Of a stretch of DNA of 64,000 nucleotides, positions 54,084-63,704 are shown in pieces. The DNA is from Rebecca billardiae RCC1528. Lineage: Eukaryota; Protista; Haptophyta. The position numbers and the translations under genes were made by a program. Below the pieces are notes generated by a model, which worked only from the letters and a program-made list of their open reading frames with translations, made no database searches and had not been told where the DNA came from. The DNA is taken from the NCBI GenBank assembly GCA_965240325.2, contig OZ251253.1:62001-126000 (forward strand), given 5' to 3'. Numbering within the stretch: the first letter of the stretch is position 1; every line of letters starts with the position of its first letter.

Positions 54084-55757
54084 TCATCCCTCCTGCGGCA
54101 GAGCCATCGGCCGCGCTCGTGGCGCGGGCGACGCGGGGTAACCGCCGGTCGACGCTGCAAACTCGTCCCCGGCGGCGTCTCGCGGCGAGTGGGGCTCGTC
54201 GAGCACGCGCCGGTGCGACGGCGCGCGCCCTGCCGCCGCTGGGCAGCACGCGGCGCCGATCGCGCGCGCGCGCGCGCCCAGCCACGAGCCGCGCGCCGCG
54301 TCTCCGTCGATGTCGGCACGGGAGTGCCGAGCGGCGGGCGAGTCCAGCCCGGCGTCGGCCTGCGAGGACACGTTGATGAGCACGAACCCGCCGCAGACGC
54401 ACAGCGCCGCGCCCGCGGAGATCACGGTCGGCGCGATGCCGTGCAGCGCCCAGTCGCTCGCCATCGCGATGGGGATGGTGAGCGAGAGCCCGACGGTGGC
54501 GACGGTGGGCGAGGTGAGCACGACCGCCTTGGCCCAGAGGAAGTCGGAAAGCACGTTGTCCAGCAGGCCCTTCACGCAGAGCATCGCGAGCACATCTCGG
54601 CCCATCGAGTCGAGCGGCTCGATGCGCGTCGCGTGCAGCAGCGCGACGACTGGCCCGAGCGCGAGCGCGTTCGCGGTGCCGAGGCAGCCGAAGAAGAGCG
54701 CGAAGGAGACGGCCTCGTCGTCGGGTATCAGTCTGCGCAGCAGCACCGTGTACGCGCCGTACAGGAACGCGCCGAGCAGGCAGATCGCGTCGCCGAGCGC
54801 CGAGGCGGGCACGCCGTCGGCGGAGGCGCCGCCGCTCACGTGGTCGGCGTACGCGGTGAGCGCGTTGCCCGCCATGCACAGCGCGACGCCGCCGAGCTTG
54901 GCGACGGAGTAGCGCTCGCCGATGAACAGGAGCGAGAGCACGAACGTAAACAGCGTCGACGTCGTCGAGATCAGCGTGGACGACGTGACGGACGTCATCC
55001 CCAGCGACGCGTTGTAACACGCGTTGGCGGCAAACCACACGGGGCACACGCGCAGCGCGAGACCGAGCACGCCCACGTACGTGACGCGCGCGCGCGGCGC
55101 GTCCTCCGGCGCGCGCGGCTCCTCGCTCTCGCGCTCGATCGTCGCGCCGTTCGCCGCCTCGCCCGCCGCCGCGCCGCCGCCCGCGCCCGCGCCGCACTCG
55201 GCCGCGCCGCCGCCACCGGCGCCGCCGCTCTGCGTCCCGTGCTGCCCTAGCAGCTGGTGGGCGCACGTGCAACGGCTGGCGCAGCACGCGGCGTGCGCGG
55301 CGGCGGCGTGGCCGTTGGCGGCGGAGGGCCGGCGGAAGGGCACCTCGCGCCACGCCCACCGCTTCTGCTCCGCCGCGCGCGGGCTGCGCGCGCGCGGCGG
55401 CGCGTGCGGGTCGCGCGCCAGCCGCAGCGCCACCGCCGCGCGCCACAGCGGCAGGTTGACGATGAAGAGCGAGTTGGAGATGTAGGTGAGGAAGAAGGGG
55501 CGGAAGAAGGAGCGCGTGAGGAAGATGTGCTGCACGAGCACCGACGCGAACGACCAGATCAGCGCGACGACCACGATGCACGTGACGCCCGCCGTCCAGC
55601 GCGCCGCGGCCACGCGCTGCATCGCCTGCCGCTCCGACCCCTCGCCCGCGGGAGAGCGCGGGCCGGGCAGCAGCGCGGCGACCGAGTCGTGCGCCTCGGG
55701 CAGGGAGATCGACGGGCGCTGCCCACGTGGCAGCTCCGCGTCGTCGGCCCCGCGCAT
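54084..55757 (-). CDS. SLC35F5/Thi74-like EamA (DMT) multi-pass transporter; start uncertain (ATG 55757 or 55622)
   Basis: Motifs GVTCIVVVALIWSFASVLVQ, RPFFLTYISNSLF, CPVWFAANACYNASL.MTSVTSSTLISTTS.LFT, LGDAICLLGAFLYGAYTVLL, NVLSDFLWAKAVVLTSPTVATVGLSLTIPIAM. Confidence 0.88.
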   Translation of the reverse strand: MRGADDAELPRGQRPSISLPEAHDSVAALLPGPRSPAGEGSERQAMQRVAAARWTAGVTCIVVVALIWSFASVLVQHIFLTRSFFRPFFLTYISNSLFIVNLPLWRAAVALRLARDPHAPPRARSPRAAEQKRWAWREVPFRRPSAANGHAAAAHAACCASRCTCAHQLLGQHGTQSGGAGGGGAAECGAGAGGGAAAGEAANGATIERESEEPRAPEDAPRARVTYVGVLGLALRVCPVWFAANACYNASLGMTSVTSSTLISTTSTLFTFVLSLLFIGERYSVAKLGGVALCMAGNALTAYADHVSGGASADGVPASALGDAICLLGAFLYGAYTVLLRRLIPDDEAVSFALFFGCLGTANALALGPVVALLHATRIEPLDSMGRDVLAMLCVKGLLDNVLSDFLWAKAVVLTSPTVATVGLSLTIPIAMASDWALHGIAPTVISAGAALCVCGGFVLINVSSQADAGLDSPAARHSRADIDGDAARGSWLGARARAIGAACCPAAAGRAPSHRRVLDEPHSPRDAAGDEFAASTGGYPASPAPRARPMALPQEG

Positions 55758-56806
55758 CCACTCGTGCGCAGCGCCGGTGCTGCGCACGACGGGCTCCGCG
55801 CGCTTGGGCTCGCCCGCCGGATGCACGATGGGCGGAGCTCTCGTCAGCTCGACTTCGGCTCGATCGTCTCTCGTCCGCCCTGGCCAGTCACTCTCGAAAA
55901 AAATCCCCGCACGATGGCTGCTGGCGGCCAGCCGGGTGCACCCCGCACCCTGGTTGCGGGGGGTGCACCCAGTGGTGCGGGCGCTGCGGACGCACCACTG
56001 GGTGCGGGCGCTGCGGACGGTGTGTGCACTGCATGGTCGCTACCGCAGCACGCCGTGCGCCGGAGCGGCCGTGGACGGCACACGGCTACGCCAGCTGCTC
56101 ACGCCGCCTGCAGCCTGCTCCTGGCGCCGCTCGCGCCGCACCGATGGCAACGCTCCGCGTTGCGCCCGCCGCTGCCATCCACGCCACCTTGGCCAGCCAG
56201 CGGCTCCTCAGACACGCCGTGTACGCACGCGTCGACGTGGGCGTGGCTCTCCCCTCCGCTGCGCCCATCAATCCGGAGCGACGCCCGCGCGCGGGCGAAG
56301 GCATCGTGCCGGCGTGCAGCTGGGGCTGAGCTGTTGACAGCGGGCCCTCATGCTGGCAGTCGTCTCGGAGTGGGCGCGCGGTCTGTCGCATGCGTAGGAT
56401 GCGGCCGGAATCACTTGGGTCAACGCGTTCGAACGCGGCCAGCGTCTGCCTGCGCGTGAGTGCGGACCCGCGCCGTAGTGCGACCCGATCACGTGCGCAC
56501 GCGCCCTGGCGGCGGGCCTGGGAAGTGCGAGGGGCGCCGACCTCCGACGCTGCGGGCTACGGGCGCTTGGCGAGGACGGCAACAACGCTGACGGAACGGC
56601 ACGACGGACGTCGTCACCTCGCGCATCCCGCGGCACCTCACCCACGGTCGGCCATGCTCAACCCACGCGCGCCATCGCGCCCCCCATGAGTCCGGATAGC
56701 CCACACGTGAACACCCGGACCGAGCGAGCGCCATCGCTGTGCCGATTTCTAAGCAGCACGAGGGCGCGTGGCCAAGCCAGCGCTGGTAGCTGACTCGCCT
56801 CGCAAG

Positions 56807-56991
56807 GTGCGGCGCGTGGATAAGCCGGCTCGCGCAGCTCGCGCGCACGAGCGCGCATGGGGTATCGCCGGGCCTGAGCAGCATGGACGGCCTCGTGCGG
56901 CTTCCGCTTTCCTCGCCGCACGCGGCGAGTGCCTGCCTTCGCGTCTGCTCACACGCGAAGCGCGCGCGCGCGCATCGCGTTCCGTGCGCAG
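56807..56991 (+). other. Probable 5'-UTR intron of RPS29
   Basis: AAG|GTGCGG donor, GCTCAC branch-like motif and TGCGCAG acceptor ending one base before the ATG; same grammar as the other introns. Confidence 0.65.
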
Positions 56992-56992
56992 C

Positions 56993-57172
56993 ATGCCGGG
57001 CAGCAAGGAGCAGCTCAACTCGCACCCGAAGGGCTACGGCAAGGGCTCCCGCCAGTGCCGGATGACGGGCCGCAAGGGCGGCATGGGTCTCATCCGCAAG
57101 TACGGCATCAACATGAAGCGCCAGGCCTTCCGCGAACATGCGAAGGAGATGGGCTGGGAGAAGTACTCGTAA
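56993..57172 (+). CDS. RPS29: 40S ribosomal protein S29 (uS14), 59 aa, atypical Cys-depleted form
   Basis: [59 protein letters not shown]. The SHP..YG.GSR and GLIRKYG.N..RQ.FRE.A segments are diagnostic of cytosolic S29. Confidence 0.93.
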
Positions 57173-59663
57173 GCGGCACGGCGCGCGCACAGCTGCGCGG
57201 GCATGGCGGCGGACGGACGGGCCGTTGGGAGGCGTGGCAAGCGCGCGTGGGCTCGTGCGCTGGCCGTCGTGCTGGCTGTGCCGCGTGTCGAGCTCGCTGC
57301 CGCGCAGCCGCCAGCGCTGGGCTGCTCGCTCAGCACGTGCTGACCTGCTCGCCCGAGCGATGATGCGAGCCGCGCTGCCGCTCGGGCGGAGCGCGAGCAG
57401 ACTTGACAGCTGCGCGCTCATCCCCGCCGCTCCCGCCGTGAGCGGGGTGGATGGATTGCGCCGTCCGCCCACACGCACGGTGCACGATCCGCTGTATCCG
57501 GCCGCGGGGGACTGTTTTGACGAGTGTGGGAGTCGGATAACAGATCGGCCGGGGTCGTTGCCATTGCCGTTTCCACGCCACCCGGGGCCGGTTGCAGCAG
57601 CTGGCGACGTTCTGATGATGTGATGACGACCGTGACCGAGGCGCGATGACGATTTATTCGTCTCGGGCCTTCGTCGTATACGACGACACTCGCACAGCGC
57701 CGCACGTACTTACTGTCGTCTGAGTCAGCCGAGCCGCGCCCGCCCGAGTCCGGGTCGAGTGTCAGTGGCCCTGTTTTATTTCGTCTTTCTCTCGTCCATA
57801 CAGTTTACTAATAAGATAATACGAGACGCACACAGCGCAGGCAGGCGAGATACAGTTTACTATGATTTAACGTGCACACTTGGTTAAGGCGTGAAACGCC
57901 ATCCAACACTGCACAAAGACACCGCCACAAAACAGACCGGCGCAGGCAGGTGAGGGGCGCGTTGCCGCACCTCATCGAGGCGGCCATTGCAGCAAGCGGC
58001 CGCCCCACGCTCGGAGGCACGCGCTCGAGAGCGCGCTCTGACACCACACGGGGAGGGTGCTGCACCTGGATGTTGTATCCCAGCCACCTCGAGAGTGCAG
58101 CCACGCCAAACACCTGCCTGCGCTGTGAGCGACGCCGCGTCGACTGATCGAGCCCCAGCCGAAGGGAAGAACTGGAAGATGAAGGGTGGGCAGGTCCACA
58201 TGCCCGGCGTAAACTGCGCGCTGCTCGCCCGCGGAGGCAAGCAGCGCACCCCCGCCGCCTTCGCAGGCAGCGGGGGCGGGGGAAAGCGGCCCCTCTCGGT
58301 TGCCGCCAGCCCCTGGCTGCCCACCTACCCCGGTTGTGGCACAGAGCCTTTGCCTGCCTCGAACACATACACCTTGTGAGCAGGGCCAGGCGCGGCCCCA
58401 CGCCCCATCGGGGCGAGTGGGCCCGCGAAGAGCGCGCCCACGACCTCGTCGGTCGTCGCCGACGCCGCGCCCGCATGCCCTGACGCCGCAGCCGGGGCGC
58501 CATCACCCTGAGGGCGATGGCCGCCCTCAGCTAGTTTCCCGCGAGAACCCAACGGCGACGCAAAACGCGCGGCGGTAAAATGATGGCGGCTTGCCCGCTG
58601 GTGCGGGCGCCGAGTCCGGAGCAGCATGATGGCACGTCATTCATTCGCGCATTCTCGTGTTGAGGCGCTGCGCTTTGGCGAAGGATGTTGCCAGACATGC
58701 TGCCTCGCCTCGCCGTGGTGCTTCGCCTTGACACATGGGTCACTCGCGGTGCACGGCAGTGTGCACGCCGCAGCTACAGGGCCTCTGTAAGCTGCCACGC
58801 ACTCTGCCTTGGCTGCTGCGTCGCACCCGTGTCAGTTAGCGACCAGTTCACAGCCGGATGAACTGCAATCGCCACCAGCTTTAAACGCTCCGCCGCCACT
58901 GCCTTGTCGAGCTTGAGATGCTTCCGTTGCGTGCGCTTGCATGCAGCCTGCCGCATGCAATTGAACGTGATCGCGGCAGGTCGGCTGGCCGGATTGTCGA
59001 GCCTCCTCGGCGTAGACTACGACACGATGCGTGCCACGCGCACCCATGACGCGCGGAAAGGCGTGCACACGTGCCCTGGCGCATCTGGTAGGCTGCAGTC
59101 TTGGCCAAGATGATGAGAACAAGCCTGCAATGCGAGCGCTCGCTATGCGGGCGCAGAGAGCGCGGAGAGTTCTGGGATCCGACCCATGGTGTTGGATGTA
59201 CCTCGTGTGCGACAACGATGAGACGGACGAGCGCCGCAACTAGATTCCTGCACTCACTGGTCACCGAGGAGTGCGCACGTGGGGGCCGCCATCGGCCGTA
59301 AGAGGTATTGTAGGGGCGTGAGTCGTCGGGTTCGCCGCCTGTGCCATTGTTCCCGGACGGGCGCCGGACCTCCATTCAGCATCGATACGGACGTCGAGCG
59401 TGGCCGATGGGCTTGGAGAGGGCCAGACGCGCATGTCCACAGCGCGGATCTGCCGCCGCCTGCTTTGCCTCCGCCCGTGCAGCCCACCCGACGGCTTGCC
59501 GCACGAGCGAGAGGTGCTGATGAGCAGCGAGGAAGGCGAAACGCACTGCGCCCTGTGGGCGAGCGCGCGGTAGAGCACCAGCGCGCTCCGTGCGCCGCGT
59601 TCCTTCGCGCCACAGCCTGCTGTCGACGGGTTTTCGCGCTGAACGTATGACCCACATCAAAGA

Positions 59664-60839: not shown

Positions 60840-61883
60840 TCAGCCCGCTCCTGCGAGCGCGAGCGCGTCGTCGGCCTGCACGCGCAGCACGAGCTTGCCC
60901 GCGCTGCCGCCCGGCTGCGCGAGCACGTCCGCGTGCGCGCGCGGCGCGTCGTCGAGCGCGTACTCGCGCGCGACGCGCGGCGCGAGCGTGCCCGCGCGCA
61001 GCGCCGCGCCCACGTGCGCCGCCGCCTCGCGCCGCTCCGCCGCCGTCGCGCGGCCGAGCATCACGCCGCTGAGCGTGAGCTCCTTGGCCATCAGCACGCG
61101 CGGCGCGAACGAGGGCAGCGCGCCGCGCGAGCCGACGACGACGACGCGGCCCTCGGGCTCGAGCACGTCGGCGGCGCGCTGGAGGTGCGACGAGGCGAGC
61201 ATCTCGACGACCAGCTGCACGCGCACGCCGGCCGGCAGCGCGATCGGCGGCTCCGCCGGCTGCGCGCTCCCCTTCCACGCGCTGTGGTCGATCGCGTGCG
61301 CGGCGCCCGCCTCGCGCACCGCGGCCGCGCCCTCGGCCGAGCCGGCGGAGCCGACGACGACGCAGCCGTGCGCGGCGGCGAGCGCGACGGCGGCGAGGCC
61401 GACGCCGCCGCTCGCGCCGTGCACGAGCACGCCCTCGCCCGGCCGCGCGCGCCCGCGCGTGAAGAGCGCGCGGTACGCGGTGAGCGCGGCCGTGCCGATC
61501 GCCGCGCCCTGCGCAAAGCTCAGCCGCTCGGGCAGCGGGAAGACGGCGTCGGCGTCGCAGAGCGCGAGCTCGGCGTACGCGCCGGTGAGCGTGCCGCACA
61601 CCCACACGCGCTCGCCCACGCGCACGTGCGCCACGCCCGCGCCGTGCGCCACGACGACCCCCGCGCAGTCCTTGCCCGGCGTGTACGGCGGCGGCGGCGC
61701 GCCCGCGTACGTGCCCGCGCGGATGTACGTGTCGACCGGGTTGAGGCCGGCGCACGCGACGCGCACGAGGACGTGCGTGCGCTCGTCCACGCGCGGGGCC
61801 TCGATCGCCGCCACGCGCAGAACCTCGGGCCCGCCGAACGCGTCGACGCGCACCGCGCGCATCGTCGTCGTCGGCCCTGCCAT
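60840..61883 (-). CDS. NADPH:quinone oxidoreductase, zeta-crystallin-like (MDR family), 347 aa, intronless
   Basis: Motifs MRAVRV..FGGPEVL, AGLNPVDTYIRAG, PYTPGKDCAG, GAYAE, LTAYRAL, VLVHGASGGVG, GKLVL. Confidence 0.92.
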   Translation of the reverse strand: MAGPTTTMRAVRVDAFGGPEVLRVAAIEAPRVDERTHVLVRVACAGLNPVDTYIRAGTYAGAPPPPYTPGKDCAGVVVAHGAGVAHVRVGERVWVCGTLTGAYAELALCDADAVFPLPERLSFAQGAAIGTAALTAYRALFTRGRARPGEGVLVHGASGGVGLAAVALAAAHGCVVVGSAGSAEGAAAVREAGAAHAIDHSAWKGSAQPAEPPIALPAGVRVQLVVEMLASSHLQRAADVLEPEGRVVVVGSRGALPSFAPRVLMAKELTLSGVMLGRATAAERREAAAHVGAALRAGTLAPRVAREYALDDAPRAHADVLAQPGGSAGKLVLRVQADDALALAGAG

Positions 61884-62317
61884 CGTGCGCGAGCGGCTCG
61901 GGCGCAAGCCAGCCGTGCGGCCGGCAATTACTCCGGTTGGTCGACCAGAAAAGAACGAAAGCAGGGCCAAACGCAGCTTTCGCCTCATGACCATCAGATG
62001 TTGAGCGCGCTTGCCGCCTACAGATTCGTCCGCGCGAAAGCCCAAGCGCTCGCGGCGAATTCGCTGCATCGCTGGCAGTTGGCACGTCATGCGCGCTTGC
62101 GCGTGCGCCTTTTATGAACTCGCGCGCGATGAACGAGGATTACGCCGCGCCACTGGCCAGTGCAGCCACTGGGCAAGTGGGTGCAGATTCAGTCGCGGCG
62201 TCGCATCTGCCCGACACACGCCCCGCGCGCGTGCCGCGCGCTCCCGGCCCGTGAGCGCGTGAGCGCGGCGCGCGCAGCCGCGTGCGCGCGCGAAGCCGAG
62301 GGCGGCGCCGCCGGACG

Positions 62318-63704
62318 ATGCGCCCGGCGATGCTCGCGCACGCGCTCCTCCGCCTGCTCCCCCGCCGCGCCCCGCCGCCGCCGCCGCCGTCCGGCAGCGC
62401 CGAGCCGCTGGAGCCTTTGGTGCTGGTGCTGCCGCTCTCGCACGCGCTGCTCGCGCTGTGCGCGCTGCTCGTGCTGCGCGCGGCGCGGCTGCTCTGGCGG
62501 ATGCGAGCGGTGCAGGTGGCGTACGCCGCCCGCCTCGCCCCGCTCCCGCCCGCGCCGCCGCCCCTCCTCCTCGCCGCCGACAAGCGCGGCGCCGGGCCGC
62601 CGTCGTGCGCCGGCTCCGACTCCTCGCCCTCGCCCGCCTCCGGCGACGCGGACGGGTGCGACGAGCCGAGGCGCGGGCTGGGCGCGGAGGGGGTCGCTGA
62701 GGCGGGGCGGCAGCTCACCTCCGCGCTCGCGCCCGCCGACCTCTCGCTCGGCGCCTCGCTCCAGCGGCTGCGCCACAAGCCGCCGCCGATGTGAGCGCGC
62801 GCGCGCCGCGCGCCCGGCGCGCGGGCGTTCGGCGCGGGCCGCGGCTGAGCGCGTGCTCCCGCCCCGCGCTCTGCGCTCGCGCCCGCGCGCCCGCGCGCGC
62901 AGGCACGACGCGCCCGACGTGGACGAGCTCCTCGCCGAGCACGGCGCGCGCGTGCGCGCGATGCTGGCGCGCGCGTGCGCGGAGGGCTGGGCGGGCTTCA
63001 AGCCGGGCCAGCACGACGCCTTGTACGCGCTGCGCTTCCTGCTGTCGCACAAGCTGTGCGCGGAGAAGGCGGCGTGCGCGATGAAGGAGACGCTCGCGTG
63101 GCGCGAGCGCAACCGCGTCGACGAGATCAACGCCTTCGTGCGCACGCACCCGCAGTCGGCGTTCCCGGGGCACGCGCGCATCGCGCCGCACTTCTACACG
63201 CCCGTGTACACGCCGGCGGGCGACTGGCCGCCGTTCATGGTGATCGACGCGGCGATCCTCGACCCGGCGGCGCTGATGGGCGAGATCTCGGTGGACGACT
63301 ACGTCGTGTACTCCATGTACCTCTCCGAGCTCATGCACGCGCGCTGCGACGAGATCACGCGGCGCACGCGCAAGCTGATGAAGGCGACGCGTCTGGTGGG
63401 CATGGCGGGGCTGCGCGTGCGGCACGCGTCCATGGGCTTTGCGCGCGCGGCGGCGGCGGCGGCGAAGGACCACGTGGACTGCTACCCGCAGAACCTGGGG
63501 CACCTGTTCCTGTGCAACGTGCCGTACGCCATGCGCGTGCTCTGGGACGGCGCCGTGCGCCCCCTCCTCCCCGAGCGCGTGATCGAGAAGACGTCGGTGC
63601 TCAACCCGCTGTGCGAGCCAGCCGACCTCGACCGCGTGACAGACTACGTGCGCTTCGACGAGCTGCCCGCGTGCATACACCCGGGCGCGGGCGGGGCGCG
63701 CTGA
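62318..63704 (+). CDS. CRAL-TRIO/Sec14 lipid-binding protein with N-terminal TM segment; exons 62318-62790 and 62903-63704 (~424 aa)
   Basis: Hydrophobic LVLVLPLSHALLALCALLVL; CRAL-TRIO-N ALRFLLSHK...A..MKETLAWR; YPQNLGHLFLCNVPY..RVLW...RPLLPERVIEK. Intron 62791-62902 (GTGAGC..GCAG). Confidence 0.85.

Follow-up and report, generated by a model that had tools for sequence, protein, structure and literature searches.

The open reading frame at positions 56993..57172 (+ strand) of the window, the 64-kb stretch of DNA analysed here, is confirmed as an intact gene for the cytosolic ribosomal protein uS14/eS29 (RPS29) in which three ligand cysteines have been replaced. We consider it probable that this is a nuclear gene for a zinc-free uS14 of the 40S subunit, of a form that we term class A, in which a turn, a loop and Lys42 replace the metal, and that it serves as the sole constitutive S29 and not as a zinc-regulated spare. 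The coding sequence is a single exon of 59 codons plus TAA, and its translation runs from the ATG at 56993 to the stop codon at 57170-57172. The protein matches Pfam PF00253 (S14p/S29e) with 43.7 bits (cut-off 27), residues 7-59 aligning to profile positions 1-54, and NCBIfam NF004424 (short-type S14) with 59.6 bits (cut-off 54). A search of all PDB chains returned 59 distinct sequences that match at E ≤ 1e-3. The top ∼ 40 are cytosolic 40S S29 (E 1.4e-16 to 1e-7) and the remainder are archaeal type-Z uS14; no bacterial, mitochondrial or plastid S14 was found among the PDB matches at this threshold. Identity to the solved S29 chains is 46-61%. An AlphaFold2 model, for which a 108-sequence alignment was the input and zinc was not part of the prediction, has a mean pLDDT of 78.6. 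Foldseek gave 123 matches with E ≤ 10, and the 50 listed are without exception uS14 chains from 80S or archaeal ribosomes, with a probability of 0.99-1.00; their query-normalised TM-scores are mostly 0.6-0.7 (range 0.46-0.67) and TMt is 0.53-0.84. The model predicts that the uS14 fold is kept. The initial annotation had named grouping with organellar S14 as an outcome that would speak against its reading; the strong sequence and fold matches are all to 80S or archaeal uS14.

The window RPS29 is under strong purifying selection. Comparison with orthologues on metagenome contigs of 70-73% GC gave dN/dS values of 0.07-0.13 (dS ∼ 0.37-0.44, dN 0.03-0.05). At the DNA level the gene is ∼ 90% identical to three related loci over 186-199 nt; the identity stops at the ends of the CDS and the flanks have diverged. 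The orthologues P0069, P0071 and P0072 share the length and the start of the window protein. Proteins 88-97% identical to it (P0001-P0003, P0069-P0076) were found only on metagenome or Logan contigs, and the exact protein occurs elsewhere on one Logan contig only, which represents the genomic DNA of the window itself (100% over positions 55164-57878). An Atlas search with the S29 protein returned only Ascomycota S29 clusters, and one with the neighbouring dehydrogenase returned bacterial clusters. An organellar S14, a pseudogene and a chance ORF were each considered for 56993-57172 and are ruled out by the matches, the intact frame and the constraint. We attach a negligible probability to the gene encoding an S14 for an organelle or being a copy that has fallen out of use and is decaying. 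The former is at odds with a protein of 59 aa that has no presequence and whose matches are all cytosolic or archaeal short uS14; the latter is at odds with an intact frame under strong purifying selection and with conservation against relatives that is limited to the coding sequence. From this constraint, and from the transcriptome-derived orthologues of other algae, we infer that the window gene is expressed.

A pyrimidine-rich stretch at 56980..56992 (+ strand) ends in GCGCAG one base 5' of the ATG and is a candidate acceptor of a 5'-UTR intron. The arrangement (Y-tract)GCGCAG(CCAG)C-ATG recurs at three orthologous loci (L018, L025 and L026), where the other upstream DNA is not alignable, and 56980-56992 may be the 3' splice site of such an intron. 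A further pyrimidine-rich tract, cttccgctttcctcgccgc, lies ∼ 75 nt upstream at 56901-56919. The upstream tracts could possibly combine a transcription-start/TOP-like element with the 5'-UTR intron acceptor. An EamA/SLC35-type transporter ORF (54087-55826, − strand) is divergent from S29. The window also holds ORFs for a medium-chain (zinc-type) dehydrogenase/quinone reductase (60843-62090, − strand) and a CRAL/TRIO-domain protein (62160-63701, + strand). The neighbours of S29 relatives differ (a SET-domain gene in L018-L023), and conserved synteny is absent. GC content is ∼ 74-76% outside repeats, and the GC3 of RPS29 is 0.95; the intact ORF with host-like codon usage described in the initial annotation is borne out by these values. 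Between 24 and 34 kb the GC content of the window rises to 83-88% with a strong GC skew (0.38-0.44), and further blocks of 83% GC lie at 40-42 and 44-46 kb. The GC content of Diacronema lutheri is 73.25% (PMC8379373), a value with which that of the window is in keeping.

The zinc of S29 has a structural role and holds together both halves of a small knuckle. A MAFFT alignment with four-cysteine (4-Cys) S29 places C22, T25, K42 and A45 of the window protein in the ligand columns. Codons 22-25 (C-R-M-T; 57056..57067, + strand) encode Cys22, the sole ligand that is kept, and Thr25 in place of ligand 2, and codons 42-45 (K-R-Q-A; 57116..57127, + strand) encode Lys42 in place of ligand 3 and Ala45 in place of ligand 4. 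Between them, codons 26-32 (G-R-K-G-G-M-G; 57068..57088, + strand) form a lengthened knuckle loop with two residues more than in 56-aa S29. Translation and alignment thus uphold the C/T/K/A pattern that had been read from the sequence, and the short insert that had been noted amounts to two residues, the spacing from ligand 2 to ligand 3 being 16 residues in the window protein vs 14 in 4-Cys S29. The CxxC...CxxC pattern of four cysteines that marks the zinc-binding C+ subgroup of S29 is absent from the window protein; since one cysteine is left, no Cys4 site can be formed. In other respects the protein resembles canonical eS29 (56 aa). Both belong to the same family, share the blocks SHPK, GKGSR, LIRKYG and RQxFR, have the same predicted fold and, by homology, would occupy the same place in the 40S head. 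The differences are T/K/A at three ligand positions, the two additional loop residues and a C-terminal MGW where canonical eS29 has IGF.

Class A was defined in this analysis by Thr or Ser at ligand 2, Lys at ligand 3, a small or aliphatic residue at ligand 4, and a loop that is longer by two residues and contains Gly-Gly. Its motifs, the C-R-x-[TS]-G-R-x-G-G-x-G loop, M-K-R-Q and the M-G-W tail, are all present in the window protein. A word-index search returned 68 proteins, every one of which reads CR[VM][TS]...[ND]MKRQxFR...MGW as the window protein does, and an exhaustive HMMER search returned 620 matches at E ≤ 1e-3. Among all sequences collected there are 133 distinct class-A cores, a sample that stems from two seeded searches, such that counts within it are not frequencies. 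G26, G29, G30, Y37, M41, K42, R43, Q44, F46 and R47 are invariant in these sequences and R27 is found in 132 of them. Position 22 is Cys in 119/133 and Ser in 14/133, position 25 is Thr in 116 and Ser in 12, and position 45 is variable (V in 58, A in 26, T in 15, and others). A marine metagenome sub-branch of class A (P0263, P0401, P0410 and clusters) is common; it has Ser22, reads ...MKRQEF and contains no cysteine.

Could the window protein still bind a metal through Cys22, together with other side-chains or groups of the rRNA? The retention of Cys22, both in the 119 class-A sequences and in fungal Cys-poor forms, agrees with such an arrangement, and position 22 therefore still matters. However, the sub-branch just described has Ser22 and zero cysteines, and ligands 2-4 have become Thr, Lys and Ala/Val, of which Lys and Ala are not ligands of structural zinc sites. 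A histidine of the window protein, His49, is not conserved either, being Arg in 90 of the 133 class-A sequences. Taken with these points, continued metal binding is very unlikely.

The named class-A sequences include the diatoms Thalassiosira oceanica, T. exigua, Seminavis robusta, Chaetoceros (two species), Detonula, Nitzschia, Leptocylindrus danicus, Ditylum and Stephanopyxis turris. Outside the diatoms, class A was found in a parmalean alga, in the dictyochophytes Rhizochromulina marina and Florenciella (two strains), in the dinoflagellate Yihiella yeosuensis and in the window alga's own clade. The orthologues in other algae are transcriptome-derived (MMETSP and EukProt entries). A region search with a longer query, aimed at transcriptome ORFs of ≥ 100 aa, added no haptophyte names. 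Judged by these sequences, diatoms, Parmales and dictyochophytes have class A as their standard S29. In P0148 (EukProt, Yihiella yeosuensis) and P0190 a ubiquitin-family domain (PF00240; 45.5 and 32.3 bits) precedes the class-A S29 at the N-terminus. This fusion is dinoflagellate-type and recalls the ubiquitin-eS31, ubiquitin-eL40 and FAU-eS30 fusions.

The distribution of the 4-Cys form was examined in a search seeded with pelagophyte 4-Cys S29. It recovered 4-Cys S29 from the brown algae Laminaria, Ectocarpus and Discosporangium, the raphidophytes Fibrocapsa and Heterosigma, the pinguiophyte Phaeomonas, Aureococcus and an unclassified pelagophyte, and also from green algae, plants and animals; the best 120 of the 217 4-Cys matches include no sequence named as diatom or haptophyte. 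No organism with both forms was found among the named class-A and 4-Cys sequences. This pattern weakly suggests one S29 form per organism, as it draws on few named sequences and on the best 120 of 217 4-Cys matches, for proteins of ∼ 59 residues that are rarely annotated. In Aureococcus (GCA_021029115.1) and on pelagophyte-type metagenome contigs (L008-L017) the 4-Cys S29 gene adjoins RPS27e, which encodes another zinc-ribbon protein. The S29 of Aureococcus has a one-residue loop insert (GNQGGGM) and keeps all four cysteines.

The initial annotation had proposed either a constitutive replacement or a paralogue induced at low zinc. The first of these fits the lineage-wide conservation, the strong purifying selection and the failure to find a named organism with both forms; for the second, the 64 kb of genome read hold no evidence in its favour. 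Stated in full, the second proposal is that the window RPS29 is a zinc-independent paralogue, that a 4-Cys RPS29 lies elsewhere in the genome, and that the zinc-free copy is induced or preferred at low zinc to give alternative ribosomes. Within one algal group, pelagophytes have the 4-Cys form (P0275, P0276, P0292) and dictyochophytes, which are their sister group, have class A (P0030, P0040, P0103), and the S29 proteins of both begin with MG[AGS]K.L.N.HPK. This contrast suggests, as its easiest explanation, that both forms coexisted in the past, which lends the paralogue proposal some credit. So does the occurrence of P0054 (class A) and P0276 (a pelagophyte-type 4-Cys gene that lies beside RPS27e, as in Aureococcus) on metagenome contigs whose GC contents are close (0.63 and 0.65). 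However, P0054 and P0276 have no sample or assembly in common among those shown, and named organisms with both forms were not found. In ten diatom genera, annotated genomes included, the searches yielded no S29 other than class A. Within the 64-kb window, tblastn with class-A and 4-Cys queries detected no second S29 copy, and the gene described here is the only RPS29 found. Both its dN/dS and its GC3 are typical of a housekeeping ribosomal gene. P0161, an odd 4-Cys sequence, was considered as the partner paralogue of the window gene and was rejected because it comes from another sample. On balance a zinc-switched paralogue is unlikely, and a constitutive class-A gene remains the reading that we prefer. 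Both forms may nevertheless coexist in some living organism.

We calculated a maximum-likelihood tree from 61 chosen sequences. With all columns included, class A and a type with a three-residue insert (class D) form a well-supported clade (98/95) that contains none of the 4-Cys sequences. A second tree was calculated after the ligand and loop columns had been removed to avoid circularity, which left 48 columns. In this tree the window clade (100/98), diatoms with Parmales (98/92) and dictyochophytes (98/92) hold, with no resolved order among the three, and the dictyochophyte class A is placed weakly (69/75) beside 4-Cys ochrophytes. The 48-column alignment would be compatible with class A having arisen once and then having been distributed through the sorting of paralogues or through gene transfer, and also with convergence. 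A rather improbable but broader scenario is that class A is an ancient gene that once stood beside the 4-Cys gene, was sorted or passed on with red-type plastid endosymbioses, cut the demand for zinc and, in some algae, still takes part in a switch. Under this scenario the recipients would be haptophyte-like algae, diatoms and Parmales, dictyochophytes and dinoflagellates, and the zinc form would have been kept by pelagophytes, brown algae, raphidophytes and pinguiophytes. If it were true, the fixation of class A in open-ocean lineages would be a heritable reduction of the zinc that their ribosomes require, and there may be algae alive today that retain both genes and alternate between them.

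Zinc-free uS14 is already present in solved eukaryotic ribosome structures, and we found no paper that states so. Among PDB chains, the window protein is matched best by uS14 of 9AXT/9AXV (...SRQCAHTGRRLGLIRKYGLNISRQSFRE...), which has C/T/S/S in the ligand columns; these entries are the inactive and the translating 80S ribosome of S. pombe. The second match (...CRISGSHSGLIRKYGLNIDRQSFRE..., columns C/S/D/S) is a chain common to 3J80, 3J81, 6FYX, 6UZ7 and others, the four named entries being Kluyveromyces lactis 40S complexes. In S. pombe, a one-cysteine uS14 works within real 80S ribosomes; by analogy only, the window protein would be incorporated into the 40S subunit in a similar manner. Like the window protein, the fungal one-cysteine proteins are cytosolic and eukaryotic and keep the first cysteine alone, and that of S. 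pombe shares its C-x-x-T-G-R turn. The S. pombe and 3J80-type proteins differ from class A in that they lack the loop insert, have Ser or Asp instead of Lys as ligand 3 and keep IGF. Their fungal N-terminus (MAHENVW) argues that they arose separately from class A. The Sordariomycete form (Diaporthe, P0249) has a two-residue insert of its own and reads CRVTGDKKKTG...MSRQAF. We also collected a further Cys-poor type without an insert (CRVTGxxQG...MSRRTF) and a marine one with an insert of three residues (CRVQGSKPGRGG...MNRQVF). These sequences thus show that eukaryotes have repeatedly lost the zinc site of S29, in at least three fungal lines and in further lines.

Zinc-independent rpsN paralogues are well known in bacteria, for example the Zur-regulated YhzA of B. 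subtilis, as is the long S14 of the E. coli type. The bacterial C-minus S14 keeps the first Cys and the C-x-x-T-G-R turn; it is typically ∼ 90-100 aa long and accompanied by a C+ copy with zinc-responsive regulation, neither of which is seen in the window. Like it, the window protein lacks the Cys4 site but has the first Cys and this turn; the two represent different branches of the family. The initial annotation had presented the gene as a zinc-free RPS29 and a convergent, zinc-sparing ribosomal protein. This holds in so far as it is a cytosolic S29 that lacks the Cys4 site and has a bacterial-like turn, whereas the rarity implied by its title is not supported, because one-cysteine uS14 is present in solved fungal 80S ribosomes and class A is standard in diatoms, Parmales and dictyochophytes.

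How the knuckle would hold together in the absence of the metal is suggested by the comparison. A C-x-x-T/S-G turn is common to three independent zinc-free versions of the protein, those of S. pombe, the Sordariomycetes and class A, and this sharing suggests that the hydroxyl of the Thr or Ser and the Gly that follows re-form the turn by hydrogen bonding. In class A, the side-chain of Lys42 might pack in the former metal site or reach the 18S rRNA, and the longer loop could supply additional contacts in place of the metal cross-link. In this model, the structural part that the metal plays would fall jointly to the T-G-R turn, the Gly-Gly loop and Lys42. If class A is the sole constitutive S29, the ribosomal demand for zinc would be lowered by one atom per 40S subunit. 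Such a saving may or may not be the reason for which class A became fixed.

Our full-text literature searches returned only bacterial zinc-free paralogues and no description of a zinc-free eukaryotic S29; within the literature searched, the loss of the zinc site in eukaryotic S29 seems not to have been described. A survey published in 2026 states that the CxxC motifs of Rps29/uS14 are maintained across diverse eukaryotes (PMC13090322), a statement that class A and the fungal forms contradict. A study published in 2022 on diatoms under zinc scarcity takes it that cells give priority to supplying ribosomal proteins with the metal, and it makes no mention of S29 (PMC9010474). The form of S29 offers a simple and testable trait for ribosomal zinc demand across phytoplankton groups. 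Ribosomes are a large store of zinc, a metal in short supply in surface ocean waters. However, such losses can be explained without invoking a shortage of marine zinc, because soil and food fungi have also lost the cysteines, and the distribution of zinc-free S29 is by itself no demonstration of adaptation. The bacterial 'two C or not two C' pattern is extended by these forms to the cytosolic ribosomes of eukaryotes. The window gene itself is an ordinary member of a widespread algal lineage of zinc-free S29, and the broader pattern to which it belongs bears on the trace-metal biology of the ocean and on the evolution of the ribosome.
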